The notes under the pieces are model-generated. The model did no database searches. It had not been told where the DNA came from and saw only the letters and a list, made by a program, of their open reading frames with translations. From Penicillus capitatus (Eukaryota > Plantae > Chlorophyta): a DNA stretch of 64,000 bases. The position numbers and the translations under genes were made by a program. The stretch spans positions 955,635-1,019,634 of the forward strand of contig OZ287697.1 in assembly GCA_965649825.1 (NCBI GenBank), read 5' to 3'. This document shows, piece after piece, positions 10,090 through 44,549 of the stretch (within the stretch, counting starts at the first letter, position 1; the number at the start of each line of letters is the position of its first letter).

Positions 10090-10560
10090 AGCAAGACGAC
10101 CCCCTTGCTGAATCTCCTGACTGCGCACGTGATCTCGTCTTCAAGGAAGACAACACAATATGGAGTGTCGACAAGGAATACAAACGACATGGAAGGATGG
10201 TCGGACGGGACTAAACGCACCTACCGTCATCAACTTCTCTACTATATGAATAACCAACCTCTCCAGGTTCAAGTAGAAAACGTGCGAACAAGAACTGTAT
10301 ACGACGTTGGTACTCGGCACCAAGACATCGATGATACCGACATTACGGCGAACGCATTCGAAGTCGTTGACGATGCGCCACCGAGAAGCTCCGATTCTCT
10401 GCAATCGCCATTGTCGTTCGACATATGCAGCACGCTTGATTTCGTCCTCAAGACGAAGCAGTCGACGCGTCGAGGTCCTCGCGACGTGCAGCACGTTCTG
10501 TTGTGTGTCCTGTTCCCTAGTGTCAGAGCGTTCTTGCCTACAGCTTCATCGCGTCAATGT
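10090..10560 (-). pseudogene. Degenerate PLL-like lectin relic (frameshifted, internally deleted)
   Basis: Minus strand gives RTCCTSRGPRRVDCFVLRTKSSVLHMSNDNG / IVNDFECVRRNVGIIDVLV (blades 1-2), then DTPYCVVFLEDEITC (blade 7), in different frames. Confidence 0.7.
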
Positions 10561-22665: not shown

Positions 22666-24677
22666 TCAGCGCTTGGAGTGGAGATGGTCTGGCTTCGTGG
22701 CCAGAATCTCCTTCACGGTATATCCAAATCGATCGAAGTCCTCTTTGTAGTAGTGATAGGCTTTCATCATCAGATCTTCAGTGTAGTACTGCCAGATTTG
22801 ATTTGCTGAGTCATGGGTCCGTGTCTGGTAAGACTTTTCACCGAATGCATGGTGTCCATCTCCCCATCCATCGGCGCCGTATTCTTCCCAGAAGTTGAGG
22901 GACGTTCCAAATTCTTTCATCTCTGGCAGAAGATGGCCTTGCTTGCCAACGAAGTCAAGCTCGGAGCGTCGGAAATTGCAGAAAGCTGATTGGATTCGGA
23001 AGTGCTGGTCGAGTTTGTCTGGATTCGGATGCAGCTTGGTGAGACAGTGTACGAATTTGTGGAAAGGTGGTATTTTTATTTTCAAGCCTTTCATACAGGC
23101 CTGTACCCCTGGGACTCTGTGGTACTGGTGCTTCTGGAAGATCTTGTCGAGATAGCCAGACAACAGACGAGAGATTGGATGACGGACGATGACCCCTCGG
23201 ACAAATTTCTGATCGTGTGCAATGGCCTGCCAGATAGACACAGATCGTCTATCGGATAAGATATATGATCTGTCGTACTTTTTTCTCTTTGTAGTTGAGG
23301 TTACCAGCGAATTGCAGTCCTGAGCGTCTCGGGCTCTGATTGATACCCGTTCCTGTCTGATTCCAGTCCTTGTACCCGCTCATTCTACGCATGAGGACTT
23401 TTGTCATCGTGCTCCCGCTCTTGGGTATGGCGCATATGACAAAGCCATATCTACACAGAATCTTCATCGCAAGCAGATTTTGACCTGTGGCTAGTTCACT
23501 GTTTCATGACGACTCCACTGGCGTCCACCTTCATCATTCTTTCCCAGTGCACAGCAGGGTGATCTTTGTCGGCACAGATCCACCGATTTCGCCTGTCGAT
23601 CATGATGCTTGCTCGTTGAACAATATGATCCACATCAGCCGTCACATCATCGACACCCTCTCTGTCCAAGTCGATGACCCTCAGAGGACATGGCCATTGA
23701 AGGCTGCTGCTGCCACGAGCACCCTTTGCAGCAAAGATGGCCCTCGATCCCAACCCTTCCGTCAGCGTCTTGGACAGATCATTAGCAAACTCCACGCATC
23801 CATCACCGTCCAGACAGACGAAGACGTGATCGGATCCCTTGAACGTGCGGTACGCGTAAGCAGACTTGACCGATCTGACCATCTCTGTGAGCAGTGCTCG
23901 GTATTGTGTCGTATTTCCCTCCGTCTTGCGAAACCACGACAAGGGATCCACAGGAATGACATGGAGTCGGGCATCTCCACTCTCGACGCTCGTCCCATTT
24001 AGATGACTCAGCAACTCCTGGTACTTCTGGCATCCGAGGTTGCAGTCACTGTCTGGGCATTGGGCACAGATTTCATCATTTGCCCGGTAGACAGACTCTG
24101 GAGAAAAAAGATGAAACGATGCTGATGTCGAATTCGCGCCACTGACGAACGCATTGCTGTATGATAACGACTGGTCACTGTTCTCCGTTCGCTTCTCCTG
24201 TTTAGTATCTGTCGCTTTCTGTGCAATCTCCGTGTGTTCTTCACTGCGTGTTGGATTCTCTACGGATGCTGGGGCATCTGCGGACACCTCTTCGATATTA
24301 CCCCACTCCTCCTGTGCCGTTTCGTGTCCGCTTGTTACAGCACGTTCCTCGTCGGAAGTTGTTTCGGTCGCCGGACTTTCTTGAATCTCGAGCCTCTCTG
24401 CTGCCGCTGCTCCTTCAGATTTGCTCATCGTTTCAGAGCTGTCCATTTTCCCAGTCGAGCCCTCCTCTCTCGCACTGCTGCTTCGAATGAATGTCGTCTC
24501 GCGATACATTTCCGTTGTCTCTTTTCCTGCTTACAGAATGCTTGTCTCGAAGATCGTTTCCGCACGCAGCATACCTGTTTGTAACTGAGCCGTATAAAAC
24601 AGGAGAATGAGGACGAGAATCACGGCACAGGCGCCGTATTCCTTCCATCCTAATCGGCGCTGGGCGACCCGAGACAT
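22666..24677 (-). CDS. Type II membrane (Golgi) carbohydrate sulfotransferase, 4 exons
   Basis: N-terminal TM (YGACAVILVLILLFY), acidic stem, GVVMKQ|YGFVICAIPKSGST, VRHPISRLLSGYLDK; three ~50-nt GT-AG introns. Confidence 0.85.
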
Positions 24678-24752: not shown

Positions 24753-26224
24753 TCATTTCGGTCTCTCATCGTTCCATTGAGACAGAAAAGAGCTCCCGTA
24801 ATCGTAAAGGAGCTCCTCTCCGGCTCGGATGTCCCTCCCAGCGAAGATACCCACGCGATAGTCTCCATCAACCAGCAGGTACTTAACATAGCAATTGGGC
24901 TCCGAAGAGTGGTTGGCAAAGCGAAGCTTGTTTCCTCGATGATTTGCATCGATCACCGTCTCGGCCGTCGCACTGAAGAGATAGGATCTGTCTTCGATGT
25001 CGTAGACCCTCCCCCTTCTCTCAGCCTCTTCGTCGCTGATCAGCTCGCCCGTGTACTCGCCTAGGCAGTCCACTGTCTCGTCCCCTCTCTCCGATTGGCG
25101 TGCTTACCGATGAGCTCGTCCTTTTTGACGCTCTCGAGCATGAACGTTCCCCATCCGACGATCTCGGACAGCCCCATCGCCACTCGCTTGTTCCGTCGCA
25201 TCCGAATGCTCATGTTGCGGCAGCAGGACGTCCCGTCGGAACGGCACGAGATGCACACGTCTGGATCGCATTCCCTCGACGCCGCCACGCACGGACACCG
25301 TTGCGTCTCGCAGCGCTGCACGCACTTGCAGCCTTTCCAGGCATTGCCGCACACTCTCTTGAACGTCCGGTGTCCGTTCCAGCAGGCGCAGTACTTGTCG
25401 CAGAAGTTCTTGGACTTGACGCAGGGGCAGGTCGCTGAGCAGTTGGCGCGGCAGGCGCAGGGCAGGTACTGGTGCCAGAGCTCGGACTCCTGGTGACGCA
25501 GACGCTTGGCCACGACAGGCGCGCCCTTTCGGCACCCGACCGAGACCTTCTTCGACACCCTGCGTCTCCTCGGCAGACTCGCCATGCGTTTTGTCCCCAG
25601 TCCGGGATGTCTCTGCAAGTGTCGCCGGATCTGCGAGCAGGTCTTCGTGAAGACGAACTTCTGCAGCTCGCACGGACGCTCGCCGTAGACATCAAGCCCC
25701 TTCACACGATCTCTCCTCGAATGAAACGCCCGTCGACGCTCACCTTCTCGAGAAGGTCGATCTCGTCGCTGTCCCAGCCTCCCTCTCCCCACAGCGTCGA
25801 CGTCTCCACGGCGTCGTTCAGGTAGCACCTGGGACCGCATGGCTGTTCGGGCGCCTCGGCACGCGGCGGCGGCTGCAGTGCCGGCAGCACGCTCGATTCC
25901 GGATGCAGCGAGCAGTTGTAGCGCACACACCTTCGACAGAGCTGCACGACGGCGTCCTGCGCCGCCCGCGGAGCACTCTCCCGACGGAGCCTCTCCTCGA
26001 GCGAAGACGTCTCGACGCCGAGCCTCTCCGAGAGCAGAGGGACGAACGTCGCCGCCTCCCATCCCTCCTCCCGCAATCGGGCCAGGCAGAACTCCCTCCA
26101 CTCGACGTCTCTGGAGTCCCATCGGCGATGGCTCTCCGACTGCACCTCGTCTTCGTCTTCGCTCGCCGGCAGCGTCTCGCCCGTGTCGTCGTCGGTGTAG
26201 AAGAGGCGCTTGTGGTTGTGCACC
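24753..26224 (-). CDS. E(z): Enhancer of zeste (PRC2 H3K27 methyltransferase), 3' part: SANT, CXC and SET domains
   Basis: CXC (QYLPCACRANC..CPCVAASRECDPDVC); SET (GEYTGELISDEEAERRG, GNKLRFANHSSEPNC, GEELLYDY). Confidence 0.93.
26220..26224. repeat. 5-bp target-site duplication GCACC (left; right copy 34774-34778)
   Basis: GCACC|TGTG...CACA|GCACC. Confidence 0.95.
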
Positions 26225-26848
26225 TGTGAAAAAATGGCGCAAATTCTGACAAAACGATGATGGGACGTCTCTGTAATAATGATATTCCTGTCACTTGGCA
26301 CTTGTCGCGTCTTTGGCTGTGCGACGTAACCGTCGCTGCTGAGTCGCAAATAAGTCATGGTGACTGGGAGTGAGTTCCTAAGAAGTTCCTAGGAAACTTC
26401 TAGAAGTTCATAATGAATTACCTGGTTCCAATGGGAACCTCATTGCGAACTCACTCTTGAAGTTCAGCTGATTTTCCTGTCGTCACATCGGGGTCGGAGT
26501 ACTTAAGCAAGGTTTTGACACATAAAAACACCTTTCGTTTAAACATCAAAGTCTACACGTGTGTTCTGAATCGCATACAATCTGTCAAAACATTCGCTGT
26601 CTATTCCCAAAGTTGTAACAAGTCGCCCTTTGCTGCAAAACTGTTTGTGTGGCCTCCGAGCTTTCGTCCATCCTCATCCAATTTCAAGACTTCCGCTGCG
26701 CTTGTGAGATGAGCCAACACGGGGACGACTCCGGCAACAATGCTCCACCTCCACCTCCCGGCCAAGGCGAGGGAGAAATACGTGTCGTCCAAGCCGAGAA
26801 CGTCGAGAGGGAGGTACAGGAGGAGGGTGCCGGAGGGAGTTCTTCACA
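26225..26848 (+). repeat. 5' LTR (624 bp)
   Basis: TGTGAAAAAATGG...GGAGTTCTTCACA; no difference seen versus 34150-34773. Confidence 0.96.
26392..26406. promoter_or_regulatory. Perfect 3-unit heat-shock element in LTR (also 34317-34331)
   Basis: gGAAacTTCtaGAAg = nGAAnnTTCnnGAAn. Confidence 0.5.
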
Positions 26849-29800
26849 TGGTTTCGGAGCGAACGGTCCACCGCCACAGCAGCCTCAAGGGGAAGACCCC
26901 CCTCCCGAATTAAGGGGGATACCTGACGCCGCACTATTACAACACCTTGGTTGGTTACGACAAGAGGCACAAAGGCGCGAGGAGGAAAGACAAGCCGCTG
27001 CCGAACCGGCGGCCGTTCCCCCGGCCCAGGAAGACGCGCCCCCTAGCGAGGACCAACAAGTCATGAGTAGGTTTGAGGAACTTATCTTCGAGAACGCCCG
27101 GGCCTTCAAGCAAAGGCTGACGGACCTCGACCAATGGGGAGGAAGGCAATTGGAGAAGCTGCAAGACTGGTGGACAAGAAGACGAGCCCCGGTCGCCGCC
27201 CGACCTTGGGTGGCCCCGGCGGGCGAACCCGTTGTCGCACCAGAACCGGACGCGCCCCCTCCAGCCGTCAATCCTCGCCCACTCCGTACGTGGGCGCGAT
27301 GGAGGGCAATTTGGTATTCCCGTTTGCACACCCTTCTCCTCTTGGGACTAATCGGGACCGTCGTCGTTCTCACACGAAACAAGGGGCAAACGCCTAAAGA
27401 GCGTTTCGCCGAATACTACGCGGCGTTCAGTGACTTCGAACGTCAACCGGATGGCTGCCCCTGGGGGTCAAAGATGACAACGACGTGGAAATTTAACACG
27501 AAGGGCTGGATATCGGAATGCGTCCCGACAACGGACTTCGCATGGGACGAGCTCCAACTCAACTCGGCATTCACCGCGAGCATGAAGGCGGCGCTGGGGG
27601 CATATGTCGGTCTAGACCCCAAGACGTCGTGGGCCAAGCCAATTGCTGAGCTCTTCGTGGACACGCTAAGTCATGCGCAATCCAATAAGAACTCTGGCTT
27701 GGACGCACAACTCATCCTCCAACTTAGTAAGATGAACCACATGTTTGCACACATGCAGGCAGAACGCAAGCTTTACGAAAGCAAGCGGCCTGCGGAGCTC
27801 GAGGCATTCGCTCTGCCACTGTCCCAGGGGCAGAAGCGTATCGAAGAGACACTGTCCGGGGCGCACCGCATGATGAATCAATTGGCATCTGACGTAACCA
27901 GGGCGGTGCGCGACGAGGCGCTGAGGAGTGGAAAACTGTCCCAGGCACAGCTCGCCGACCTGGAGAAGAGGATCAAGGAAAGCCAGGATGCAAACACTCT
28001 GTCGCTGAGCAAGCAGATGCAAGGAATTGAGGAATCGATGACCCGGCTCAGGCGTCACTGCGACAACGCAAGGAAGCGCTGCGAAGAAGCGCTTGAGCTG
28101 GTCGATAAGGCAAGGCAGGACGGTATCATTGAGAACAATCTCGACACCCAACGCCTAAGGGAGCAGCTCGAGGACACCTTCGAAGACTTTCAGCGCTGGG
28201 GAGCAAAGACCACCGGCAGCCTGTTTTCTGCCTGGCCGTGGCTTCGCAGCGGACTCGGACTGCTCGCCTCGTTTTGCTCCTGGTTACCGTTTTGGGGCTG
28301 GGGCATAGTGATCTTCGTAATGATGTGCGTGGTCGCCGTGCTAGGCGCTCTGCTCAAGAAAACCGTGGATATGATCCACGGAGGACTGAACCTCATGGAA
28401 TCTTTGCAGAAGGCCGTCGAGAAGCTCGTGGAATGGGTGGTCGCCATCTGTGCGCTACCATTCCGACTCATCCGCTGGGTCCTGCGACTGGGCTGGTGGA
28501 CGGTCCGGATGTTTGTGGATAAGTTGGGGCAGGAGTTTGTGCTGGAACGACCAGCCCCGGCCTCCCCGCGACAGCGGAGTCCAAGGACACCACGAGCGGG
28601 CGCCGCCCGAGGGCGACGTAGCCGACGAAGCAGCCAAGGATCGGAGAATCAAGGACGAAGCAGCCAGAGTTCGGGACAAGGACACCAAGAAGAACAAGCC
28701 AGTGAGCCATCTCCGCAACAGGAGAACGGGGGACGAGCTGTCGTTCAAGATCCGTCACCAACCGCACCGAGAATCGAAGAGGTGGCCCAGGTATCGACAA
28801 ACGATCCCGGACCGCGTCAATCCCAAGACCGCACGCCGCCAGCGGGAAGAGTGGCTCCAGAGGTGCCAAGACCTGAAGCCCCTCCAGCGACTCCGCAAAA
28901 CACACCGCCGCCTCCACAAGTTCCACGGGAGGAGGTACCCCGCGAAGAAAGAAGAGGAGGCGGGCGAAGAGGACGAGGAAGACGAGGGGGTCGAGCGCCC
29001 GGAGGCCGAGGGCGCCAGGGACAGCGGTCGGGTGGCTACGCTTCTGACGAAACCCAAGACCGACGTCGGACGGAACCACGACTTGCGTGGGAACTCCGCC
29101 CTGTCAGTGATGGTGAAGACGAGAAGTTGCCACACTCGCGGAGCCCGGCACTGCCGCCGAATTTCGAGGCATATGAAAATATCCTGGACCGACTCCGCCA
29201 ACTGGAAATGGACAGAAGGCCCCTTGCGGCGGCACGTCCGCCGCCTCCGCCGATGGTCCGACCTCCCGCACCGCGCCCGGCGTCACCAATTCCCAGACGG
29301 GCTCCACACGTTGGAGGACCCTCGCTGCAAGTCACACATACGCCAAGACGCCCCAACCAGAGACGCTGTGCAAATTGCAACGCATCTGGACACGTAACTA
29401 ACGAGTGCCCACTCTTCTGGCAGCAAGTGGTTCAGCCTCCGGTCAGTGAGGTTCCGCGACAAGCAGATGAGGGACCAAGCGACAGGCCACCAGTGGCAGC
29501 GGTATGGGACGCCGCCACAAGTCGTGACCCATCGCGGCTCTACTACGTACGCGCCAAGCTGGCCGAGGGGGCTAGTCCCGTTCAGATGCTCGTGGATTCG
29601 GGATCCTCCGTATGCGTAATGCCCACGGAACGCTGCATACAAGGCGGTTGGGAAATCCAGCCCCTCCCGGAGCCAATGGAAGTCCAGGCTTTCAACGGCG
29701 TGGCCACCCAGGTTCGGGGCCGAGTGGGCCTCCCGGTGGACATCGGCGGAGAAACAAGACAGGTGCCATTTCTCGTAGTGGACGGGCCTGAGCACCCAAT

Positions 29801-29924
29801 CGTCGGCGTCAACGCTCTGCGAGATTTCGGCTGGAGTTTGGACTTCGCGGGAAACCGACTCGTGGCCCCGGATGGGCGCTCGGTCATGTGCGCGGCGGTA
29901 CAGGAAGCACACCGCCCAAACTAG
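26709..29924 (+). CDS. Retroelement ORF1: two-TM coiled-coil envelope-like protein + CCHC Zn knuckle + aspartic protease; no recognisable capsid
   Basis: TM1 LHTLLLLGLIGTVVVLT; heptad-rich luminal region; TM2 FWGWGIVIFVMMCVVAVLGALL; CANCNASGHVTNEC; MLVDSGSS. The ATG lies inside the LTR. Confidence 0.85.
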   Translation: MSQHGDDSGNNAPPPPPGQGEGEIRVVQAENVEREVQEEGAGGSSSHGFGANGPPPQQPQGEDPPPELRGIPDAALLQHLGWLRQEAQRREEERQAAAEPAAVPPAQEDAPPSEDQQVMSRFEELIFENARAFKQRLTDLDQWGGRQLEKLQDWWTRRRAPVAARPWVAPAGEPVVAPEPDAPPPAVNPRPLRTWARWRAIWYSRLHTLLLLGLIGTVVVLTRNKGQTPKERFAEYYAAFSDFERQPDGCPWGSKMTTTWKFNTKGWISECVPTTDFAWDELQLNSAFTASMKAALGAYVGLDPKTSWAKPIAELFVDTLSHAQSNKNSGLDAQLILQLSKMNHMFAHMQAERKLYESKRPAELEAFALPLSQGQKRIEETLSGAHRMMNQLASDVTRAVRDEALRSGKLSQAQLADLEKRIKESQDANTLSLSKQMQGIEESMTRLRRHCDNARKRCEEALELVDKARQDGIIENNLDTQRLREQLEDTFEDFQRWGAKTTGSLFSAWPWLRSGLGLLASFCSWLPFWGWGIVIFVMMCVVAVLGALLKKTVDMIHGGLNLMESLQKAVEKLVEWVVAICALPFRLIRWVLRLGWWTVRMFVDKLGQEFVLERPAPASPRQRSPRTPRAGAARGRRSRRSSQGSENQGRSSQSSGQGHQEEQASEPSPQQENGGRAVVQDPSPTAPRIEEVAQVSTNDPGPRQSQDRTPPAGRVAPEVPRPEAPPATPQNTPPPPQVPREEVPREERRGGGRRGRGRRGGRAPGGRGRQGQRSGGYASDETQDRRRTEPRLAWELRPVSDGEDEKLPHSRSPALPPNFEAYENILDRLRQLEMDRRPLAAARPPPPPMVRPPAPRPASPIPRRAPHVGGPSLQVTHTPRRPNQRRCANCNASGHVTNECPLFWQQVVQPPVSEVPRQADEGPSDRPPVAAVWDAATSRDPSRLYYVRAKLAEGASPVQMLVDSGSSVCVMPTERCIQGGWEIQPLPEPMEVQAFNGVATQVRGRVGLPVDIGGETRQVPFLVVDGPEHPIVGVNALRDFGWSLDFAGNRLVAPDGRSVMCAAVQEAHRPN
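26849..26861 (+). other. Primer-binding-site-like sequence
   Basis: TGGTTTCGGAGCG immediately after the LTR CA; resembles the iMet-tRNA PBS TGGTATCAGAGC with two mismatches. Confidence 0.6.
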
Positions 29925-32749
29925 CTGCCCCCTCCAAAAGCCACGGGAGGGGCGGCTTTGTTCGCGTGCACCAGCAGTGGGAAATCAAGGATGGAACCGG
30001 GATCTCAATCACTCCAAAGGGAGTCCAGCTGCAGAGTGGAAAGCCAAGATTCTTGCCGCCGAGAACTTGGGAACGCTGGTACCTCCCGTGGAAGATAGAA
30101 GTAGAAGGCGGCGTCACAATAGCTAGCTGCTTCCAACGGCCGGAAGTTCTGTCTGGAGTAGTGGTGACGTCTGGAGGAATGATACGTTGTGAGGTCTACA
30201 ATACGTCAGAAAGAGTGATCCGGATCACTCCGACGACGCCCCTCGTTTCCTTGCATGGACACGACAGCATCGAGGTAGTCCGGCTGGCCAAGATCAACAC
30301 GGTCGCCGCCGACACTCTCGCTGAGTCCCTGCGAGACGAGCTGGCGAGTCGTTTTCCTGACGTGAGCGACCTGAGCCGACACCCTATTGTGCCCGCAATG
30401 GAGCCCCTCCAAGTCAGAGCCGACGAAGTCTGCTGGACACCACCCAGAGAGCAAGGGTTGCGCACATCGTACAAGACAGAGCAGGTCGCCGACCGACGCA
30501 AGATAGCCGAACAGCTTGAGCACTATGTTCAGCGCGGCTATCTCCGACAGGTCTCCATGGGTGAGCGAGTGGCTCTAAGCCCCCTGTACCCCATCCCAAA
30601 GAAGGATGGGAGCTACAGGTTCACCAACGACTTTCGTTGGTTGAACGCTCACTTCAAGAAACATGGAATGACCCAGATCGACGTCTGGCGGCGGCTGTGG
30701 GATGTAGACCCGGCATGGAGGTACTTTGCGAAGCTGGACCTCAAGGATGGCTTCTTCGCCATCCCGGTGTGCCCAGAACTGCAGACTGCGTTTGCCTTCA
30801 CCTGGCAAGACCGCCGCTACGCCTGGAGACGCCTGCCGCAGGGATGGTCCTGGAGCCCGATCCTCTTCGCTGAGCGCGTTGCCGAGATCGTCCAGGGGCT
30901 CGGTGCGGTGCAATACGCCGATGACCTCCTTGTAGGCGGTGTCACTCCCGAAGAGCTCTGCGACCGCGTCCGTAGCATCTTCGCCCGTTTCCAGGAGTTC
31001 GGGCTCAAGGTCAACCTCGCGAAGACCGAGCTCCTGCGAACGAAAGTCAAGTTCCTGGGGATGGAACTGTCGCATGGGTCGTGGACGCTGACAGACTACT
31101 TCCGCAGTCGCTGGACCCAACTCGGAGAGGTGACGCACTGGAAAGATCTTGAGCGCCTCATCGGAGTGCTCTCCTATCTGAGGCGAACCATTGTGGACCT
31201 CGAGAGATTGATAGCGCCCCTCCGACAGCTGCTAGCAGAAGCCAAGGCAAGAAAACAAGACGGCAAGTGGTGGGACCGAGCCCGACGGGAAGTCTGGGAG
31301 GTGCTTCTGCGAGCCCTCGATCGACAGGTATTGCTCGAACTGCCTGGTCTCCGGACGACGCAATACATTCTCGAGACGGATTGGTCTGGAGAGCACGCGG
31401 GATATCTGCTGTGGGCCAAAGGGCCAAACCACGAGCACCTCGTCGACCTCGGAAGCAAGAGTGTGCCGGAAGTGACTTCATCTTTCCTCGGGGAACTCAA
31501 GGCAATCGTGTGGGCTTGTCAAGCAACAAAGCCGTTGCGAGGGGACTTTCCTTTGCTCATCCGGACGGACAACCAAGCGGTCGCCGAGCAACTGAGCACC
31601 AGCACGCCAAGTCTCAAGGACAAGCGAGTACTGCGCCTACTAGGGTGGCTCCTAGGAAACGAAAACTTCATTGTCGAATTCGTTCCCGGGGCAGAAAACC
31701 AAGGCGCGGACCTCTTATCCAGACCCCGTAAGGGAAAGGGCGCAGCCGAGGTGTCTCAGGCAACGGCGGGCCCGACACGAGGCCAGCTGAGGCAGATCAA
31801 GAAGGCTCACGAAGGGCACTTCAACTGGCAGACAACGCTGAGGAACCTCAAAGCAACGGGAGCAGATTGGCCAGGGATGAGAACACATGTCCGACAGTTC
31901 GTCCAAGGGTGCAGGCAATGTCAGGCCTACGGACGACCCATTCAGCGACCCGTCTGGGGCTCGTGGGATTGCCCCTGCCCCAACGACACGGTCTTTTGTG
32001 ATTTTCTCGGACCCATACAATGGGAAAAGGAGGAAGACAACGTGCACGTGTTTCTCATGATAGACGGATTCAGCCGCTACGTCATGCTCACAGCTTCGGC
32101 AGGGCCGACGGCCGAGGCCGCGAAGGCGGGACTGCGTAAGTGGATATATCACTTCGGGCCCCCTCGCCGGCTCGTGAGTGACCAAGGCGCAGCTTTTGTA
32201 TCCATCGACTTCGAAGAGTATTGCAGCCGGCGCCACGTGGAGATGGCACTGTCTCCTGCCTATGCTCACTGGAGCAATGGAATGGCCGAGCGAGCAATTG
32301 GCACCATCCTGGGTCGAATCCGAAGAGAAGGCCCAAGTGCGCCATGGCCGTCACTCCTCCAACGTATCGAGAAGGCGTATAACGAATCATGGCACTCTGC
32401 GCTTGGATACGCTCCGAGTCTCGTCATGACGGGCAAACGAGCCGATGGTACGCGGCTCCAGAAGGAGGAACTGGACAGGGTCCAAGGAAGAGCATGGAAG
32501 CGTTCGGACGACCAACGGCGGAAGCGAAGAACAAGACACGAGCGGACCATCCCGACGAGAAGAAACCTACGAGTTGGAGACAAGGTCGCAATCATGGTGC
32601 CGCGGCCAGCACATAAGCTAGCGGCCCAGTGGGAGTCGGGATGGCGCGTCCGCGCTATTGTCACTCCACATATCATCGAGGTCGAAACACTGGATGGGCG
32701 GAATCGCCGGTCGTGTCACTCGCACCAGCTACGGCTTCTGCAGATGTGA
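29888..32749 (+). CDS. pol: Retroelement Pol: dUTPase-like - reverse transcriptase - RNase H - integrase
   Basis: RT (YRFTNDFRWLN, KLDLKDGFFAI, LPQG, YADD); RH (LETDWS, ELKAI, TDNQA, ENQGADLLSR); IN (H-H-C-C, CDFLGP, SDQG, NGMAER). Confidence 0.96.
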   Translation: MRGGTGSTPPKLAAPSKSHGRGGFVRVHQQWEIKDGTGISITPKGVQLQSGKPRFLPPRTWERWYLPWKIEVEGGVTIASCFQRPEVLSGVVVTSGGMIRCEVYNTSERVIRITPTTPLVSLHGHDSIEVVRLAKINTVAADTLAESLRDELASRFPDVSDLSRHPIVPAMEPLQVRADEVCWTPPREQGLRTSYKTEQVADRRKIAEQLEHYVQRGYLRQVSMGERVALSPLYPIPKKDGSYRFTNDFRWLNAHFKKHGMTQIDVWRRLWDVDPAWRYFAKLDLKDGFFAIPVCPELQTAFAFTWQDRRYAWRRLPQGWSWSPILFAERVAEIVQGLGAVQYADDLLVGGVTPEELCDRVRSIFARFQEFGLKVNLAKTELLRTKVKFLGMELSHGSWTLTDYFRSRWTQLGEVTHWKDLERLIGVLSYLRRTIVDLERLIAPLRQLLAEAKARKQDGKWWDRARREVWEVLLRALDRQVLLELPGLRTTQYILETDWSGEHAGYLLWAKGPNHEHLVDLGSKSVPEVTSSFLGELKAIVWACQATKPLRGDFPLLIRTDNQAVAEQLSTSTPSLKDKRVLRLLGWLLGNENFIVEFVPGAENQGADLLSRPRKGKGAAEVSQATAGPTRGQLRQIKKAHEGHFNWQTTLRNLKATGADWPGMRTHVRQFVQGCRQCQAYGRPIQRPVWGSWDCPCPNDTVFCDFLGPIQWEKEEDNVHVFLMIDGFSRYVMLTASAGPTAEAAKAGLRKWIYHFGPPRRLVSDQGAAFVSIDFEEYCSRRHVEMALSPAYAHWSNGMAERAIGTILGRIRREGPSAPWPSLLQRIEKAYNESWHSALGYAPSLVMTGKRADGTRLQKEELDRVQGRAWKRSDDQRRKRRTRHERTIPTRRNLRVGDKVAIMVPRPAHKLAAQWESGWRVRAIVTPHIIEVETLDGRNRRSCHSHQLRLLQM
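29915..29960 (+). other. -1 programmed ribosomal frameshift signal (slippery heptamer + H-type pseudoknot)
   Basis: C_CCA_AAC directly before the ORF1 TAG; stem 1 CCCCTCC/GGAGGGG; stem 2 AAAGCC/GGCTTT; the -1 frame is the pol ORF (PKLAAP..). Confidence 0.8.
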
Positions 32750-32978
32750 CGCACTCATTAGGTAATCCGACGGGTTGCTGACGGATACACCTTTGTCTTC
32801 CAAAGTTCATAACGGTTTGCGACGGATGACCAAATGCGTAGGGAAACTCCCGATGGTTGGAAGATAGCTTCCTCCAGCGGAGCGAAGTTCCCGACGGATG
32901 CCATGAACTTTGGGCGAACCATAGGATAACCGCCAGTCAGGGCGCGCGCTGGGCACGTGTCCTCGGAGGTTACGGGGG

Positions 32979-32984
32979 TATAAA
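32979..32984 (+). promoter_or_regulatory. Putative internal TATA box for ORF3
   Basis: TATAAA in GC-rich context 39 nt before the ORF3 ATG; CACGTG at ~32954. Confidence 0.45.
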
Positions 32985-33022
32985 GGGACCGCCCGCACCG
33001 GGATTTCACCATTTGCTCGCTT

Positions 33023-34042
33023 ATGTCTTTCGCAGTACTCAGCTTTTTTGCGCTCGTGTTTACGCTCACTCTCCTGACATTCATTGAATCGTGGCCGGCC
33101 GTAGCCCAGGAATTCGTCGTTGGCCTTTCCGTCTTTGTCGCGTTCCGAGTTCTCGAGGGCGCCTTCGCTCTCATTTTCGAAGCCATGAAGAGGGAAAGAA
33201 GCTCGTCCGCGTCAGAGGGAAACCTGCACCGCCTCACCTGCCTCAGGCGCGTGACCCCAACCCCGTCACCAGACAACCTGGCCCCTACCACGGATCGCAG
33301 CATGGCGGAAATGAGGGCGGCCGAGGTAAGGGAGCAATGTCGTTCCCTGACCCTGGCCGACCTCATAGCCGAGATTGAGCGACGCTGCGCAGAGGGACCC
33401 GGCACACCAGCCACAAGAGGAAGCACCCCTGTCGAAGCCACACGTGGAGGAAACAGCCAAGGCGAAACAAGCCGGCGCAGGAGCGGCCGCGGAAGTCGCG
33501 GGGAGGGCTCGCGGCGAAGGATGCGCAGCCCCTTGCCCCCTCGACCTCCGTCCCCTACCCCTCCGGAATCGCCGCTCCTCTCAGCGCGAGCCCACCCACC
33601 GCCCCTCACCGCCATTTGCCGACCGCCAGGACCGCGATACATTGCCGCAGGGGAGCTCGGGGAGATCAAATTGCCACACCGTTTCCTCATTGACCCCGAG
33701 CTCTCGGGTCACGTGGTCAGCAGAGCGACTGCGGAACTGCTTGGACTCCGTGTCCAGCCTCTCCAAGGGCCCCTCCCGCCAGGAATCGAGGGACGTGTCA
33801 TTCGCAGTGAAGGCGGCACAAGCGTGATAGTGGGCAGCACCGCCGCGAGGGTGAAGATCGGCCCCCACATGGAAGTCTGCAATTTCACCGTCGCGGGAGA
33901 CAAGGTGGAGACGAGGCTGGGGAGAGAGATAATGCAGCCTTTCGACCTGACGCGAGATAGAGTAAATGGAAACCTGTACCAGTCGCAGACAACGAAGGTG
34001 GGGGTTTCGGACCCCCGGGCGCTCATACGCCGTCGCGCCTGA
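33023..34042 (+). CDS. Retroelement ORF3: two N-terminal hydrophobic helices, coiled coil, Arg-rich tract, degenerate retropepsin-like domain
   Basis: MSFAVLSFFALVFTLTLLTF..FVVGLSVFVAFRVLEGAFALIF; HRFLIDPELSGHVVSRATAELLGL..CNFTVA..RLGREIMQPF mirrors the LID(T/S)GA..ILGxDFL layout. Confidence 0.75.
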   Translation: MSFAVLSFFALVFTLTLLTFIESWPAVAQEFVVGLSVFVAFRVLEGAFALIFEAMKRERSSSASEGNLHRLTCLRRVTPTPSPDNLAPTTDRSMAEMRAAEVREQCRSLTLADLIAEIERRCAEGPGTPATRGSTPVEATRGGNSQGETSRRRSGRGSRGEGSRRRMRSPLPPRPPSPTPPESPLLSARAHPPPLTAICRPPGPRYIAAGELGEIKLPHRFLIDPELSGHVVSRATAELLGLRVQPLQGPLPPGIEGRVIRSEGGTSVIVGSTAARVKIGPHMEVCNFTVAGDKVETRLGREIMQPFDLTRDRVNGNLYQSQTTKVGVSDPRALIRRRA

Positions 34043-34149
34043 AGAACCATCTGCTGTCATCAGTATTTCAACTAGGTAGGCTGTGTGGGCTGGTTTTCTT
34101 CTTTGCTCCGCACATCGGAGTTTGCACAACGGGAATGCGGGTGCGCCCA

Positions 34150-34773
34150 TGTGAAAAAATGGCGCAAATTCTGACAAAACGATGATGGGACGTCTCTGTA
34201 ATAATGATATTCCTGTCACTTGGCACTTGTCGCGTCTTTGGCTGTGCGACGTAACCGTCGCTGCTGAGTCGCAAATAAGTCATGGTGACTGGGAGTGAGT
34301 TCCTAAGAAGTTCCTAGGAAACTTCTAGAAGTTCATAATGAATTACCTGGTTCCAATGGGAACCTCATTGCGAACTCACTCTTGAAGTTCAGCTGATTTT
34401 CCTGTCGTCACATCGGGGTCGGAGTACTTAAGCAAGGTTTTGACACATAAAAACACCTTTCGTTTAAACATCAAAGTCTACACGTGTGTTCTGAATCGCA
34501 TACAATCTGTCAAAACATTCGCTGTCTATTCCCAAAGTTGTAACAAGTCGCCCTTTGCTGCAAAACTGTTTGTGTGGCCTCCGAGCTTTCGTCCATCCTC
34601 ATCCAATTTCAAGACTTCCGCTGCGCTTGTGAGATGAGCCAACACGGGGACGACTCCGGCAACAATGCTCCACCTCCACCTCCCGGCCAAGGCGAGGGAG
34701 AAATACGTGTCGTCCAAGCCGAGAACGTCGAGAGGGAGGTACAGGAGGAGGGTGCCGGAGGGAGTTCTTCACA
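34150..34773 (+). repeat. 3' LTR (624 bp)
   Basis: Direct repeat of 26225-26848. Confidence 0.96.
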
Positions 34774-35209
34774 GCACCTTCCGCTGCTGCTGATTGGCCG
34801 ACACGAAACTCCAGCTGGTGTAGACCGGAATGGTCTGACCAGCAGGCAGGATGCGCGCCTTGCGGTACTGAGGCGCGTCGGAGGAAAGGCTGTCGAGCCT
34901 GACCCCGATGCTCCTTCCCGCCTCGAGGCGTTCGGATGGCCCCTTCTGCCTTCGCTTGCGTCGCGATCGCTCGTGGGCGAGGGTGTCCGTTTCGACGTCG
35001 GTCGCCTCGGAGGCGACCCTGTCCGACTGCAGGAGACGGAGCGGAGCGAGCGCGGCCTCCAGCGACTGTCGGTTGCGTCTGAGTTCGGCAGCGGCCTGCG
35101 ACGCACGGGTCTTCTCGAAGACGGCACGCGACTCCTGGTAGCTCTCCTCGAAGCGCTCCTCGAGGCTTCTGCTGCGCGAGGCGTCGTCGCACAGGGTCGC
35201 GTTCATCAT
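34774..35209 (-). CDS. E(z): Enhancer of zeste, 5' part (separated from the rest by the LTR element)
   Basis: IPVYTSWSFVSANQQQRK + VHNHKRLFYTDDDTGETLPASEDE joins across the element and matches the CLF/SWN-type YTTWIFLDRNQ..RRIYYD..GE motif. Confidence 0.85.
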
Positions 35210-36856: not shown

Positions 36857-37501
36857 GACGTCTAGTCTGCCGTAAAGAATGCAGGACCGTCGTCGCGAAG
36901 GCGGTGTTCGTACGGACGGACCTCCGCACGACCTTCATTCGCTGTACGACGGACCGACTCTCCATGTCCGACTTCGACGCGATCCTCTCGGAGTACCTGC
37001 GCCTCAGCGGGTGGCCAGCCCTCTCTGTTCACCGCGCTCTGGACGACGGGCGCCGTGCGTGCAGGTATGTCCCGTCCTCGACGCAGGAACCTTCCGAAGA
37101 AACGGCGCGTCTGCGGGAGAGACTGAAGCACCGCCTGGTCGAGTTGGCGAGCAGACCGGCCAGCGCCAAACCGGCTCACTGACGCAAGGAGATACATCTG
37201 TACGAAGTGTGTAGAAGACGACGAAATGACCCGTTTTAAGAACCTCCTTTCCGAAGGAACAAGAACAGCAGCATCACTGTTGAACGAAGTAACAGAACGC
37301 ACGAGGTCCTTGCGTCAGTACCAAATGAAGACTCTCTGAGAAAATCAGGGAGAAGCCACCCCATTCACACCGCTGAAGTTAACGAATGGCTTAATGGTCT
37401 AAATGCAGAGGCTATTAAAGCAGGTCAACGTCGCCGGATTTGGCATTCGTTTCGTCGCTATTTTGAGAGCGAGTTGTGTTTTCTTCTGGAAACTCGCCAA
37501 G

Positions 37502-38768
37502 ATGCAGACGACAAGCCTCTCGACTCTAATCGTCGTAGCGCTTTTGTGCGCCTGCAATGGCGTTTTCGGGTCCTGGATCCCGACTAGTAAGATGACGGCG
37601 CAAACAGATCTTGACGGCAGAGACTCCGATCGTAAGTTTTTGCCTCGGGACGAAGTTACGTTAAATTCCTCGCTGCAGACGCACATGCACGCCAGAAAGA
37701 CGACCTTCTACCGTATGTTTTCGCGAAGCCACAGGTGCGTATGTTCTTTCCGAGGTATTTTTTTGACGGCGCTGTATTTTAAAGGACGCCAACGGCGACG
37801 TGGATAAAAGCGCCACCGATGTGTTCAAGATGCTCGGCGGCAACGCACAGAGCCGCCCATGTTGCACGTCATGGGGACCTGGCCGCGTCGACTGCTTCAT
37901 CCGAGCACCGAAATCGAACGTCATGCACATTTCCATTGACAACGGAGTCTACAGCGAATGGGAGGATCTCGGCGGTGTGATCGTCGACGAGATCGAATGC
38001 GTCAGTCGCGACGTTGGCCTCATCGACGTCCTGGTGCTGGACGTCGGAATTTCACTCTACGACAAGGTGTTTTCTGATGGAAAATGGAGCGATTGGCAGG
38101 GTAAGGGTGGGAAGTTGATGGAAGTTCCTTCCTGTGCTGTCCGAACGCCCAAAATCGTCAACTGCATGTTGAGAGGAACGACGAACAGAGGCTATCACAT
38201 TGGAGCTACTGATGGCAAATGGACGTCGTACACAGACCTGGCAGGGGGCTTGTTCAGCCCCCTTGGATGTTCGGCAAGAGACGCGAACAACTTCAACTGC
38301 TTCGTCAGCGGAATGAACTTGAACCTTTATCACAGATACTGGATCCAGGGAGTAGGATGGCAGGGCTATGAAAATCTCAAAGGTCTGGTGAAAGGTCAGC
38401 CATCGGTGACGACGTGGGACGCTAACAGGATCGACGTTTTCTCCTTGGGCGTGAGAACGAACAGCGTCATGCAGAAGACATGGATAGGTGGTAAAGGATG
38501 GCAGGAGTGGGTCGATCTGGGAGGCGTCTTCGACTCGGCACCCGAATGTGTGACCACCGGTGTCGGCAAGATCCACTGTTTTGCCATTGGTGACGATTCC
38601 TATCTCTACAAGAACGACTACGCAGATGGAAAGTGGGGTGGCTGGGTCAACACGCACGTGCCGTTCCTCGAGACACCGTCCTGTGTTGTTTCCAATGCAA
38701 ACGAAGTGTCCTGTTACATGCGCGGATTCAACAAAAAGCTGATCGAGGTCGTCTACAAATATGCCTGA
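37502..38768 (+). CDS. Secreted PLL-like lectin-like protein (B3; paralog of A3), 3 exons
   Basis: Same signal peptide, intron structure and seven blades as 7446-8713. Confidence 0.82.
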
Positions 38769-39429
38769 AGTTCTGCCTGCTTGATTGGTCTGCCAAACAA
38801 ATGAGTTGGCAATTCGTTTTTATCTGTGCTGAGTTCTGTCTGCCAAATCCATCAAATACTCAACAGTCCAACAACTGTGGAACAGTTTAATGTGCCATTT
38901 TTTGCGACATTCGCTGCAGATGCGATGCGCCGACGATCGAAGAAAACGATTGCTGTCGTGTCGGCCAGAGAAAGCGGCGCAGTTCGTCTCTTCTGCTTCG
39001 ACGATGGAAGTACCGAACTCTAACGGCGATGTCATCGGAAGCGTCGCGTTGGTTCTTCGTCTCCAAACCACGGTGCTTTCGCCTCTCACAGGCAGATCGA
39101 GAACCAAGTCTTTCCCCCTTCTCGGAGACAGCCATTTCAATATTCTGTATGAAATGAAGAAGTACAGAATCCTTGAACTCAGATTCGGGAACTTTTTCTA
39201 GGTGTTGTGGCAGGGATTCCCCACGCGTTCGACGAGACACGAAGCGTCCGTTATTTTGATGTCGTCACCTGCCCGATCGACCGCTCTGCTCTTTGATCTT
39301 GGTGTTCGCACACGTCTTTGTTTGAACTGTCGCGCAATGGAAAACGATACCTCTCACGCGCAAGACTCGCTAGATTGAACGGATAGCATTGGTACCGAAT
39401 TTGCAAGCCCATCGAATAGTCTTTCACAG

Positions 39430-39575
39430 TCCTGTTTGCCTTTTTGCCAGTCTTTTCAATGTTAAATCCAAGCAGCGCGACGGCCTCCTTGAACTGCTTG
39501 TCGATCTTTGGTATGAAAGCATTCGTGGAGTACTGCCAGATTTGATTCGCCAAGTCAGGCATGCGTGTCTGAGGC
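39430..39575 (-). pseudogene. Sulfotransferase C-terminal fragment (arm B copy)
   Basis: Mirror of 6640-6790. Confidence 0.58.
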
Positions 39576-40650
39576 AGGACTTTTGGGGAACGGTTCATGC
39601 ACATGACAAGAAAGCACAGACGCAACACCAGAGAAAACAAGTTCTCTCGTCGGCGATCAGATCGACTGTCTCCCTCATTGATCTATCCTCTCACTTCATC
39701 GACGAATCGTCGCTTCGAGCACCATATTTGGTTCTATCGGTTGTCGAGTTCTTGTCACTTCTACAATTGTTACAGTGATTGTTATTTTGGTCAGTTTTGA
39801 TGACCGAGCTCATCGAATAACAACAAGACTCACAGTTGTTTGCGATACCTACCATCTTTGAAAAAACATACACCCGCGAAGGCCGCAAGGGTGACTGACA
39901 TCGTTGACAGCTCGGAGGCAATCGGTGATTGTGGCCCCTACTTGTTAAAGCTGTTTGAATACAGAAGGTTGGTCGGGCCCGTGTCGAGGGGAACTGTAAA
40001 GCCTGTGGTTTGACTGACAGAGACAGATGGGATTTACGAGGTGATAAGATGACAATAAAAAGCTAAATTCTTTGTAAGAAAACGAGAACCCTGTTTTTTC
40101 GCTTTTACTCTGACACGCGTGCCCATGAATTACCCACAGGAACATCTGTTACCTTCGCCGTCAGATCATCAGGACTGCTGCCCGCTTCCGGCCGCGCCAC
40201 AATCAACATATTTAGACGCTTCTCTTTTATAACTCCGCCTTGTCTGTCATTTCTCGCTTGTTGCAGCCTGCTTTGACGACACGCAATGCGTCTGTCATAA
40301 AACTACTTGAACGACCTTCCACGGCTTTAAGCTAAGAGAGATTCTTGACAGACCCGGCGGCGAAATATAGCTCGTTATGAGTATTGCATCCATCCATCGA
40401 CGAGGAGACATTCGATGTATGATCGAAAAAAGGAAAGGATGCTTTTGAAGTTTTTTCTGTTCTATCTACGTTCTCTACCTAATTGAAAACCGTCTTAGAG
40501 AAAGGAAGGCTTTGTTGGGCGATCCAGCAGCATGCGTTGCAATGGTCCAACTTCGACGTATCCGGTATTGTATTCCGTCTGCTGTGCGACGCTGTGTCCT
40601 GTCATGTCAAACACATAAATGTTTATTCTCACCGGAACAGTAACGCTATT

Positions 40651-42285
40651 TTTTTAGATTGCTTGCTTTTACAACTTCTTTTTAAGAAGATCAGGAGTGC
40701 GACTGTACACTAAGTGTAGCAAACAGTATTCAATCCGCTAAACAGAGAGACCGGCAGGGGTGAATGAAATGAAAGGTCCAGATCAGGTGTTTCCATGCGG
40801 GAGCCTGGGGAGTCGGACGAACGGGCGGATCGGCAATACCATGTAATCCAGGGTAGCAAACGGGGCCTTGTGTTCTCCCAGGAGTTGCTCGTGAAGTGTC
40901 TTCGAAATGAAGACTTTCAGGTTCTTGCTCGGTGTCCATTCGGGAAGGGGCTGTCCTGAGGTATCGCGCTTCCTACGATTCAATCGATGCGGCGCGGCGA
41001 GGTGCATTTCTTCGAGTTCGGTTGCCGGTATCTTCCAGCGGGCTGCGTTCTGTTCTGCAATGGCGGTGATGGCTGCTTCCGGGTCGATGTCTGTGTCGAC
41101 ATTGCTGATGACTACTGGGATCTTGTCTTTCGTGGGCGATAGGTACGGATTGTTGACTTCGAAGGTTCCAATATCGTCGAGCTCCAGGTCCCAACTGGCA
41201 CCGGCGCATTCTAGGCAGCGGTCGAGCGCTCTCTCAAACTGCTGGATCAGGTCGGAGCGGATTTGCACGTAGTATCTGCCGCCGTGGTCAGAGCGGATGT
41301 CTTCCACATATTCCTTCAAATTCTTGATCTTCAGAGTCCGTTCCAGGCTGATGCCAAGCTGGCGAAAGGACGGACGATCTCCCTTCAGGGTCACTGGGCA
41401 GAGCTGGAAGCTGCGTTCATCGCATCGGATCTGGGCCTTGATCGCGTTAGTTTGTCTCCGGATCTCTCGTGCCTGGGTGGTCCGTTGGCGCTGGGCGGGG
41501 GTCGTGGTCTGGGGCTGCTCTGAGGGCAGGGACTGACGGGCGGCGTCGCGGTACGAGCGTGTGACTTCTCGAACGGTGCTGTCCGCAGAAGGTGTAACGT
41601 GGGTCATAGGAGCTGGGGGTGTTGGAGCAAACGAGACCATGGATTTGTGGAATCCGAGACAGGTTCCCATCTCCCCGAGACGAGTGGAGATTCCCATGAG
41701 CGCTTCTCGGTTTTCAGGTGGAGCTTGTCCAATGGCGTATGCCAGATGAGCCAGCGTAGTGTCGATGTCTTGGGCGAGTGCTTCCAGGAGATCTGATGGG
41801 GTAGCTTTTTCCTTGTACCGGCAGATCTGTGAGAGACAGGAAGACTTAGCGTGCGGGTCAAAGATGGGGCCTTCTGAGGCGAGTAGAAGCGAGGTTCTAG
41901 CGTCCTCGTGGCGTCGGACAAGTCGGAGCTGCACGGCATCTCGCTTTTCATGGGCTGCCAGGTAAGCTCTGATTTTCTCGATGAGCTGTGCGGGGTCCAA
42001 GGTGGCCGCAAGCTGGGTGGAACAGGCTCGGAGTGCAGTGTTGACGAGAATGAGCTCCGCCTTGCTCATCGCCTCGAGTACCTCGGGGGTCTGACGCAGG
42101 TCGCGTCGATACCGAACCGTGTTAGCCGCCTGAGCAACCGCCGTGCGCACTGGGTCAGGGGCGGCGTCAGGAGCTCCAGACTGAGATCCGGAAGGTTGCA
42201 TCGTTCGCTTTTGCGCGTGCAGGCACCGTCGTTCGGCAAGGGTTTTGAAACGGCGAAACGAAAGTGCCGTACGGGATTGCTCTCT
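40651..42285 (-). mobile_element. Non-autonomous LINE derivative (ORF1 only) with 16-bp TSD and short poly(A)
   Basis: TSD GAACAGTAACGCTATT at 40635-40650 and 42286-42301. Arm A has a single empty site (~5563-5578). A-tail and TGTAA signal at the 3' end. Confidence 0.85.
40783..42201 (-). CDS. LINE ORF1 (gag-like) protein, ends just before the usual CCHC knuckles
   Basis: 472 aa; IPVVISNVDTDID..AAITAI and ..LPIRPFVRLPR resemble the pre-C2HC region of I/Jockey/R1-type ORF1. Confidence 0.65.
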   Translation of the reverse strand: MQPSGSQSGAPDAAPDPVRTAVAQAANTVRYRRDLRQTPEVLEAMSKAELILVNTALRACSTQLAATLDPAQLIEKIRAYLAAHEKRDAVQLRLVRRHEDARTSLLLASEGPIFDPHAKSSCLSQICRYKEKATPSDLLEALAQDIDTTLAHLAYAIGQAPPENREALMGISTRLGEMGTCLGFHKSMVSFAPTPPAPMTHVTPSADSTVREVTRSYRDAARQSLPSEQPQTTTPAQRQRTTQAREIRRQTNAIKAQIRCDERSFQLCPVTLKGDRPSFRQLGISLERTLKIKNLKEYVEDIRSDHGGRYYVQIRSDLIQQFERALDRCLECAGASWDLELDDIGTFEVNNPYLSPTKDKIPVVISNVDTDIDPEAAITAIAEQNAARWKIPATELEEMHLAAPHRLNRRKRDTSGQPLPEWTPSKNLKVFISKTLHEQLLGEHKAPFATLDYMVLPIRPFVRLPRLPHGNT

Positions 42286-42840
42286 GAACAGTAACGCTAT
42301 TGGAATTTTTGCAAAAGCTCTCTGCTCTTTGGGTCCCGTTGGAGGTGGGTACTCGAATCGCCGAAGACAACCATCGCGATTGTTGCGCGGTCAAATAACC
42401 ATCCAGGCGCCTCACGGCCGCATAGAGCAGCGGATGGAGAATCTCCACGAACCTCCTTCACAACGATAGGGATGGTTGTCGATTGCATGCATGAGTTCGC
42501 AGTTGTTAGAGCTTACGGTTAGGAATTCTTTACCGCCATGGGTATTGAAGGGCGACAATTCGCGTAGGAACATCTCGAGTTCTTGGCACTTCATCCGAGT
42601 GTGACTTTATCTGCTTCGTTCGCGCCGAATCTGGATTAAGTTCATTATCATTGTTTTTCGATTCTCGACATGTCCTCCATCATCAAAGCGTACGTGTGAC
42701 GAGTGCCTTGGATCACAGAGGCGGTGGATGCATGCCCGTTCGAGGAGTGTCCTCACGCACGAGGAAACCATGACAAGTGGCGTGATGCCATAAAAATTCG
42801 GACGGGGTATTAGAACCAGACGATTTTGTCGTCTATGTCT

Positions 42841-44079: not shown

Positions 44080-44549
44080 CTCTCACTCGGCGTACAGACA
44101 GACAAACGACAGTCGGAGAGAAACGTGCAGGTCAACCGATGCCTTGATGCGAATTGCCGTGTCAACTGAGACTCATGCGTACGACACGAACAAAGTACTG
44201 GACGACGCATCCGAGAGAGACACGTACTTGCAGAGTACGGCGTGACTTTCCGAAGAAAGAGTGTGGACATCGTCACAGTGATGGGCTGATAAATTTGTGC
44301 AAACGCCCGAGAAAAAACATGTCGCTTCTCCGATGGTTTCTGTTCTAAAGTACTGGAGAACAAAGGAAGGCTGACGTCGAGTACTCGAACCTGATGAAAG
44401 TTCAAGTCCTGGCCCATTTGGACAGTCACCAATCAAATGGAGAAGCCTTACACAATGGCTGCTAGTTTGACAGGTTAAAGATTTGAACAGTAACAGCTTG
44501 TAAAAGCGAAGGTGGTTGCCAAATCATGCGTTTGGCAGACCGGCAGATC

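Follow-up and report, generated by a model that had tools for sequence, protein, structure and literature searches.

When a transposable element lands in a coding exon, is the host gene broken, or can its transcript be repaired by splicing? This question is raised by a 64,000-nt stretch of DNA from Penicillus capitatus (assembly GCA_965649825.1, contig OZ287697.1, forward-strand positions 955,635 to 1,019,634; the window below), in which a long terminal repeat (LTR) retrotransposon of 8,549 bp lies antisense within an exon of an E(z) gene. An earlier note on this DNA had proposed that the element forms a precise, spliceable intron and that an acceptor hard-wired in its LTR is an introner-like, self-masking strategy. 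While the proposed boundaries are exact, we consider, at a probability of roughly three in four, that the locus holds an ordinary and very recent insertion that probably disrupts the gene, the TG...CA termini of the element and a GGTGC target having produced the GT...AG ends incidentally.

The element, of the Ty3/gypsy order, occupies 26225-34773 on the + strand, while E(z), with three exons, is encoded on the minus strand, so that the open reading frames (ORFs) of the element run antisense to the gene (Table 1). Its two LTRs, aligned locally to each other, are identical at 624 of 624 positions with no mismatch, and each starts with TGTG and finishes with CACA. ORF1 holds a retropepsin domain (Pfam gag-asp_proteas), and ORF2, which is shifted by -1 against the frame of ORF1 and overlaps it by 37 nt, carries RVT_1, RT_RNaseH_2, Integrase_H2C2, and rve in that order. 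The TG...CA LTRs, the 5-bp duplication, the presence of an empty site elsewhere, and the order protease, reverse transcriptase, RNase H, integrase are all features of Ty3/gypsy elements. The primer-binding-site-like TGGTTTCGGAGCGAACGG also adjoins the LTR of another copy of the family (L006), and a near-identical version occurs in L007; no tRNA genes and no rRNA or Rfam matches were found within the window. At the other end, GGGAATGCGGGTGCGCCCA of the polypurine-like stretch is kept in relatives L008-L012, and a conserved GGGAATGCGGGTG tract lies immediately 5' of the 3' LTR. Judged by its LTRs, duplication, and domain order, the element is an intact, apparently autonomous LTR retrotransposon of the Ty3/gypsy order; no further copies or solo LTRs of it were found within the window.

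Downstream of pol, ORF3 combines a hydrophobic N terminus with a long helix, a proline-rich middle, and a beta-rich C terminus, and it has homologues at 53-62% identity in five related elements, each with pol upstream. Its best Pfam match, Asp_protease_2, is weak (E = 0.088), and in our reading of the alignment its catalytic motif would be replaced by D-P-E/K/Q. An AlphaFold model of ORF3 had a mean predicted local distance difference test score of 49.7 and was too poor to use.

The interrupted gene is, on its domain and structure matches, a true E(z)/EZH2 homologue, for which H3K27 methylation and a PRC2 role are predicted. The preSET_CXC (PF18264) and SET (PF00856) domains were found on the gene calls of an independent ENA record, and the joined 602-residue product has human EZH2 and EZH1 as its best solved-structure matches (E = 4e-70, residues 238-592), in an alignment that takes in the catalytic NHS and ELxxDY motifs. 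The product scores 240 bits against animal EZH2 and about 103 bits against Chaetomium Ezh2, a gap that speaks against an ascomycete host, and the position of its intron 1 is common to the homologues P0002, P0003, and L002. The insertion lies within conserved coding sequence, since the peptide that spans the insertion point (QKVRNQKRLFYTDDDTGETLPASDDED) is kept in two homologues from other organisms at 44-45% identity. The earlier description of an LTR retroelement standing antisense in an E(z) coding exon is thus borne out by the LTRs, the domains, the 5-bp duplication, and the EZH2/EZH1 matches.

The junctions of the insertion are clean. On the minus strand, the donor-side junction reads ...CAGCAGCGGAAG/GTGC/TGTGAAGAACTCC... 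(34778/34777), and the acceptor-side junction reads ...GCGCCATTTTTTCACA/G/GTGCACAACCAC... (26225/26224) or, with the whole duplication, ...GCGCCATTTTTTCACA/GGTGC/ACAACCAC.... The E(z)-strand k-mers were GGAAGGTGCTGTGAAGAAC and CATTTTTTCACAGGTGCACAAC for the occupied junctions and CAGCAGCGGAAGGTGCACAACCACAAG for the empty site. Joined to each other, the flanks form a single open frame, ...SWSFVSANQQQRKVHNHKRLFYTDDDTGETLPASEDED..., which is split at the site into ...IPVYTSWSFVSANQQQRK/VHNHKRLFYTDDDTGETLPASEDED.... A contig of a related organism, L001, with 77-81% identity at the nucleotide level, aligns with window positions 37173-34774 and then passes straight into 26223-25956, reading ...CAGCAGCAGCGAAAAGTGCACAACCGAAAACGCC... 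across the site without interruption. This copy is itself decayed, with a 1-nt deletion and an in-frame TGA; it breaks off at position 25956 of the window, and the unit repeats 6 kb on. On this contig the 5' region of E(z) is thus found twice in decayed form (4033-6690 and 12397-12742), marked by a frameshift, an in-frame stop, and an internal deletion. Both copies are without the CXC-SET part; in the related organism, the 5' piece of the locus has been duplicated and pseudogenised.

The occupied allele is also present on an ENA contig (ERZ25074695:ctg331694_18x, 37,459 bp), and exact-protein look-ups of ORF1 and ORF3 returned matches on that contig alone. One could suppose that a misassembly placed the element in E(z) and that no such allele exists, as the LTRs are perfectly identical and the sequence comes from an assembled metagenome with a coverage of about 18x. 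However, a misjoin would not make a clean 5-bp duplication around exact TG...CA ends, and the flanks join in a conserved frame and match the uninterrupted relative base for base; we give this explanation next to no credence. On these comparisons, the insertion is very recent and derived. The absence of differences between the LTRs sets a 95% upper bound of roughly 0.2 million years on its age, at the 1.3e-8 substitutions at each site in a year that are given for LTR elements of fungi (PMC12130899), a rate that may not be that of the host. With zero differences over 2 x 624 bp, E(z) had no time to decay, and its intact frame is therefore uninformative on function, tolerance, or splicing.

We propose that an intact Ty3/gypsy-order element inserted itself, in antisense orientation, into the first and large coding exon of E(z) and that its integration at a proto-splice-like AAG/GTGC duplicated GGTGC. 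Because the element ends in TG...CA and the duplication is GGTGC, a GT and an AG happen to lie in position for exact removal. A transcript of E(z) would run on into the antisense LTR and terminate translation two codons past the junction (RKVL, stop): the read-through frame inside the LTR is AAG GTG CTG TGA, which ends a 146-aa product in ...QQQRKVL. The outcome would be this N-terminal fragment or a decay-prone RNA. Most likely, we infer, the E(z) allele is inactivated rather than rescued; that it is seen at all may mean that there has been too little time for its purging or that loss of E(z), heterozygosity, or redundancy is tolerated. It represents a natural, very young E(z) insertion allele, useful for annotation and not surprising.

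Gene callers on the ENA contig find fragments of 146 aa and 218 aa. The latter (P0001; window 25702-26358, minus strand) is a chimera that begins at an ATG in the antisense 5' LTR and continues in frame into the remaining exon 1. If made, it would be without the N-terminal 144 residues, and an antisense LTR promoter, if one exists, could yield such a truncated E(z). When exon 1 was used as a query for homologues, the matches were confined to the fragment of the window itself, both decayed copies from the related organism, and two homologues that are distant. The predicted uninterrupted exon-1 product has no exact match in the protein collection, where both fragments are present, a weak negative since one substitution or another gene call would hide it. 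Scans of JGI metagenomes with the conserved LTR core and with the upstream flank plus duplication gave no matches and are likewise weak negatives.

How much weight can the splice geometry bear? Taking out 34777..26224 (8,554 nt, GT...AG, phase 0) gives back exactly the sequence of the empty site, ...QQQRK/VHNHKRLFYTDDD..., and the GT and AG are so placed that the coding sequence is left intact, as in introners. A solo LTR with one copy of the duplication comes to 629 nt. The reading in the earlier note, with a GT donor supplied by the duplication and a CAG acceptor made of the T-tract, CACA, and the first G of the second duplication, holds at both junctions, as do its frame arithmetic and its length for the solo form. 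Where an element with TG...CA termini has duplicated 5 bp of its target, it can be removed exactly as GT...AG only if these five bases, read on the gene strand, fit GGTNN, AGGTN, NAGGT, or NNAGG, whichever way the element points. Such permissive 5-mers make up 3.1% of the window outside the element and cover 71 of 1805 positions of the E(z) coding sequence (3.9%); GGTNN by itself accounts for 1.0-1.2%. The splice geometry is a real but modest coincidence and is not improbable. Moreover, it cannot be counted again as evidence, because it was the reason for which the window was flagged. Exact GT...AG ends at 3-4% of sites for any such element mean that geometry alone should not be read as adaptation. 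The earlier interpretation is thus supported as to the exact boundaries, but not as to a working intron or an introner-like strategy.

The proposed donor, AAG/GTGCTG, departs from both homology-validated E(z) donors, which follow GTRAGC (GTGAGC and GTAAGC). The departure is built in, as the terminal TG of the LTR fixes T at +5 and G at +6 of the donor in every GGTNN insertion (G/GTNNTG). The sample behind this donor consensus is small, comprising the two E(z) introns validated by homology, an intron of one orthologue, and some ten candidates of 44-56 nt; the ten best intron candidates of the window were preselected for GTRAG and so provide no independent donor test. Among all GT...AG pairs of 38-65 nt that join long open frames, no donor pentamer was enriched, since GC-rich sequence is open in many frames. 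On the acceptor side, the validated E(z) introns have no pyrimidine tract ahead of their AG (GATCGTGTGAAG and GTGGACTGCCTAG), and the value of the LTR pyrimidine tract as a splice signal in this host appears doubtful. In addition, when the element is read in the sense of E(z), it offers 54 further GT sites with a U1 match of at least 6/9, of which 10 are GTRAG. It also offers 23 YAG sites, the proposed acceptor counted in, where pyrimidines fill no fewer than 9 of the 12 upstream positions. The proposed intron would be about 180 times the length of the 44- and 47-nt introns, a caveat that the earlier note had rightly raised, and the 629-nt solo version would still exceed them more than 10-fold. 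Introner families have median lengths of 30-654 nt (PMC9860276), a range outside which 8,554 nt falls.

Several points weigh against the interpretation as a disruptive insertion. One relative tolerates C as the +4 base, the orthologue intron 1 of 41 nt having the donor AAG/GTGCGA, though with G at +5. On our own U1 count, the proposed donor scores 6/9, equal to the validated intron 2 donor TCG/GTAAGC, so that this count by itself does not condemn it. The exonic side of the donor, AAG/GT, is good, and the proposed acceptor is pyrimidine-rich. Furthermore, neither an empty allele nor a second E(z) of the organism was found in the protein collection; if E(z) is essential, the lack of a visible intact copy would favour some rescue.

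These points would suit an accidental, leaky intron, in which the spliceosome removes the element and one duplication from some transcripts and leaves a hypomorph, with no adaptation on the part of the element. The exact phase-0 geometry would restore the conserved peptide between an AAG/GT exon context and a T6-CACAG acceptor, and the terminal repeat would allow the ends of the intron to pair over about 9 bp. There is also a precedent in Drosophila, where an antisense 412 element in a vermilion exon is spliced out at a low level, as mentioned in PMC4691828. Nevertheless, the length, the T at +5, and the wealth of equal or better donors and comparable acceptors within the element all tell against leaky splicing, and no transcript-derived protein spanning the junction was found in the collection; we regard it as unlikely. 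The stronger claim is that the 8.5-kb autonomous element is precisely spliced from the E(z) exon, with its donor from the duplication and its acceptor from the LTR, in a host whose introns are about 45 nt long. This would be an intron gain in progress, to be followed by a 629-nt intron after LTR-LTR recombination, and we hold it to be very unlikely. In a variant of that claim, the insertion would knock down a transposon-silencing enzyme and so favour the element's own spread; E(z)-type enzymes silence transposons in many unicellular eukaryotes.

An evolved form of self-masking would have the 3' splice site built into the U3 terminus, with GGT targets preferred or surviving, antisense exonic insertions acting as introners, and solo LTRs turning into 629-nt introns. 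It agrees with the antisense pyrimidine run and CACA, which are kept at the U3 terminus in all seven family members. However, the U3 terminus (TGTGAA[A/G][A/G]AA) and the U5 terminus ((T/A)TCTTCACA) form an imperfect terminal inverted repeat, 5' TGTGAAGAA... / ...TTCTTCACA 3', and because the LTR ends are inverted repeats, a pyrimidine run followed by CA stands at the 3' end of both strands, including the sense strand at the other LTR end. Recognition of the ends by integrase is the ordinary reason for terminal inverted repeats in LTRs. The hard-wired acceptor of the earlier note is accordingly one arm of this repeat, which can be explained without invoking selection for splicing. The same design also imposes the poor donor with T at +5.

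A survey of other copies for a bias to GGT/ACC, as the earlier note had suggested, speaks in the same direction. The window copy has the duplication GCACC on the + strand of the element, which permits exact GT...AG removal on the antisense strand. The duplications of six other copies, each read at one junction, are GGCCC (L006), GCCGG (L008), GCCCG (L009), AATCT (L010), CCCGC (L011), and GCGTC (L012), and none of the six permits exact GT...AG geometry on either strand. Six misses are expected by chance; they exclude a strong GGT/ACC preference, having by our own arithmetic a probability of at most 1.6% if at least half of insertions used such sites. Family members thus occur in likely exons without the self-masking geometry: L011 lies antisense in a beta-helix repeat ORF of about 250 codons (L011 3654-4529, beta-helix/PMP-like), whose frame reaches the LTR edge and continues into the LTR. 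In L010, a 337-aa antisense ORF (L010 3779-4792) stops at the LTR edge. The host ORF is thus open to the junction in three cases, E(z), L010, and L011, and all three insertions are antisense, as self-masking would have it, though three are too few for a bias.

Nor is the family abundant. Its gag cluster at 90% identity has two members, the window copy and L006 (96% identical), among about 15 billion proteins. Where introners are multi-copy, we found one close second copy and five more distant relatives. LTR-derived introners do exist elsewhere (PMC12130899). Considering the inverted repeat, the six unsuitable duplications, the ORF interrupted in L011, the low copy number, and the lack of a solo LTR in the window, we judge evolved self-masking extremely unlikely. 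L006 was assembled from the sample that yielded the window copy, likewise with 18x coverage, and its LTR is 85% identical to that of the window copy. The family-bearing contigs of the sample have coverages of 13x, 13x, 15x, 18x, 18x, and 32x, a spread that could reflect haplotigs and collapsed regions or several organisms; the E(z) insertion may be heterozygous. Germline-limited DNA with programmed elimination, as in ciliates, was also considered for the locus and dropped, the GC content being 50-60% and no supporting feature being seen.

The surroundings of the locus are rich in repeats. An inverted segmental duplication (1535-9054 and 37161-46314, 93-95% identity) brackets a 28-kb segment with E(z) and the element, and homology to L001 begins at 37173, a few bases from the inner edge of the right arm. 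At 40635-42301, the right arm has 1,651 extra bases between 16-bp direct repeats (GAACAGTAACGCTATT), of which the left arm has one copy with one base different. This extra segment, which contains a 472-aa ORF without a Pfam match (40783-42201, minus strand), may have been inserted, in which case its duplication is unusually long, or else it is the counterpart of a microhomology deletion in the other arm. An ORF family of about 1 kb, lineage-specific and without a Pfam family, has at least six copies at 67-77% identity (Table 1). Just downstream of the E(z) locus lies one arm of an inverted repeat pair (1-812 and 22690-23516, 83% identity), and the ORF at 58835-59845 on the minus strand encodes a beta-helix repeat of the Chlamydia PMP type and so resembles, in its kind of protein, the gene that L011 interrupts. 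Most ORFs of the window had no match in a Pfam search.

Table 1. Positions of E(z), of the retrotransposon, and of a repeated ORF family in the window. A slash marks an exon-intron boundary.
Feature	Position	Strand	Details
E(z) exon 1, overall	35209..25744	-	carries the insertion
E(z) exon 1, upstream of insertion	34779..35209	-	start codon ATG at 35209
E(z) exon 1, downstream of insertion	25744..26219	-	VHNHKRLFYTDDD...DLLEK
E(z) intron 1	25700..25743	-	44 nt, AAG/GTGAGC...GTGTGAAG/GG
E(z) exon 2	25108..25699	-	CXC domain and beginning of SET domain
E(z) intron 2	25061..25107	-	47 nt, TCG/GTAAGC...CTGCCTAG/GC
E(z) exon 3	24753..25060	-	remaining SET, ...RFANHSSEPNC...ELLYDY..., stop TGA 24755-24753
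Left target-site duplication	26220..26224		GCACC on + strand, GGTGC on E(z) strand; G 26224 completes CAG of proposed acceptor
5' LTR	26225..26848	+	624 bp, TGTGAAAAAATGG...GTTCTTCACA; first bases on minus strand, GCGCCATTTTTTCACA
Primer-binding-site-like TGGTTTCGGAGCGAACGG	26849..26866	+	abuts 5' LTR
ORF1, gag and aspartic protease	27063..29924	+	first ATG past LTR at 27063; stop-to-stop ORF from 26649
ORF2, pol	29888..32749	+	domains for reverse transcriptase, RNase H, and integrase (zinc-binding and core)
ORF3, 339 aa	33023..34042	+	downstream of pol; without Pfam family
Polypurine-tract-like CGGGAATGCGGGTGCGCCCA	34130..34149	+	abuts 3' LTR
3' LTR	34150..34773	+	624 bp; end on minus strand, TGTGAAGAAC, supplies +5 onward of proposed donor
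Right target-site duplication	34774..34778		minus strand G(34778)/GTGC, last exon base and GT of proposed donor
ORF family of about 1 kb, copies	2361-3331, 7406-8373, 37835-38808, 44602-45488, 54107-54899, 10306-10507		

Compared with the Ty3/gypsy elements (Metaviridae), the element shares the TG...CA LTRs, the 5-bp duplication, and gag-protease followed by pol in the -1 frame, with a putative primer-binding site and a polypurine-tract-like stretch, whereas it adds a conserved third ORF after pol. Close named relatives are absent, the nearest gag sequences being unnamed metagenome proteins. It represents a previously undescribed, apparently active three-ORF gypsy-type family, new as a family but of a known kind.

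The removal of an antisense 412 element from a vermilion exon was shown with RNA (Fridell, Pret and Searles 1990, Genes Dev 4:559, as cited in PMC4691828). That case resembles E(z) in that an LTR retrotransposon stands antisense in an exon of a host gene and its removal by splicing is at issue. Splicing at vermilion reportedly used cryptic sites inside the LTRs, was imprecise and inefficient, and concerned an untranslated exon, whereas the proposed removal at E(z) would be exact and based on the duplication.

A closer match in architecture is found among introners. In introner families of Symbiodinium microadriaticum, the 3' splice site comes with the element, and the 5' one is provided by the duplication (PMC9860276), and the scheme for IE1 of Micromonas divides the splice sites in the same way (PMC11282704). 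With these introners, the proposed E(z) case shares an acceptor from the element, a GT from the duplication, and an unchanged mRNA length. They are short (medians of 30-654 nt), mostly non-autonomous DNA transposons with many near-identical copies, all of them annotated introns; E(z), in contrast, holds a single 8.5-kb autonomous LTR element whose geometry recurs in none of six relatives. LTR retrotransposons make up about 12% of classified introner families, and in Panicum virgatum autonomous Copia elements and solo LTRs are among them (PMC12130899), so that both full-length elements and solo LTRs serve there as spliceosomal introns. Their membership rests on multiple intron-forming copies and on annotated or spliced models, while that of the E(z) element would rest on the geometry of its junctions. 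Precise removal of 8.5 kb in a genome with 45-nt introns, if shown with RNA, would be a striking example of a full-length LTR element giving rise to an intron. It would still not be without precedent, as introners derived from LTR elements and duplication-derived splice sites have been described before (PMC12130899, PMC9860276), and the splice-site architecture proposed for E(z) is one already published for introners.

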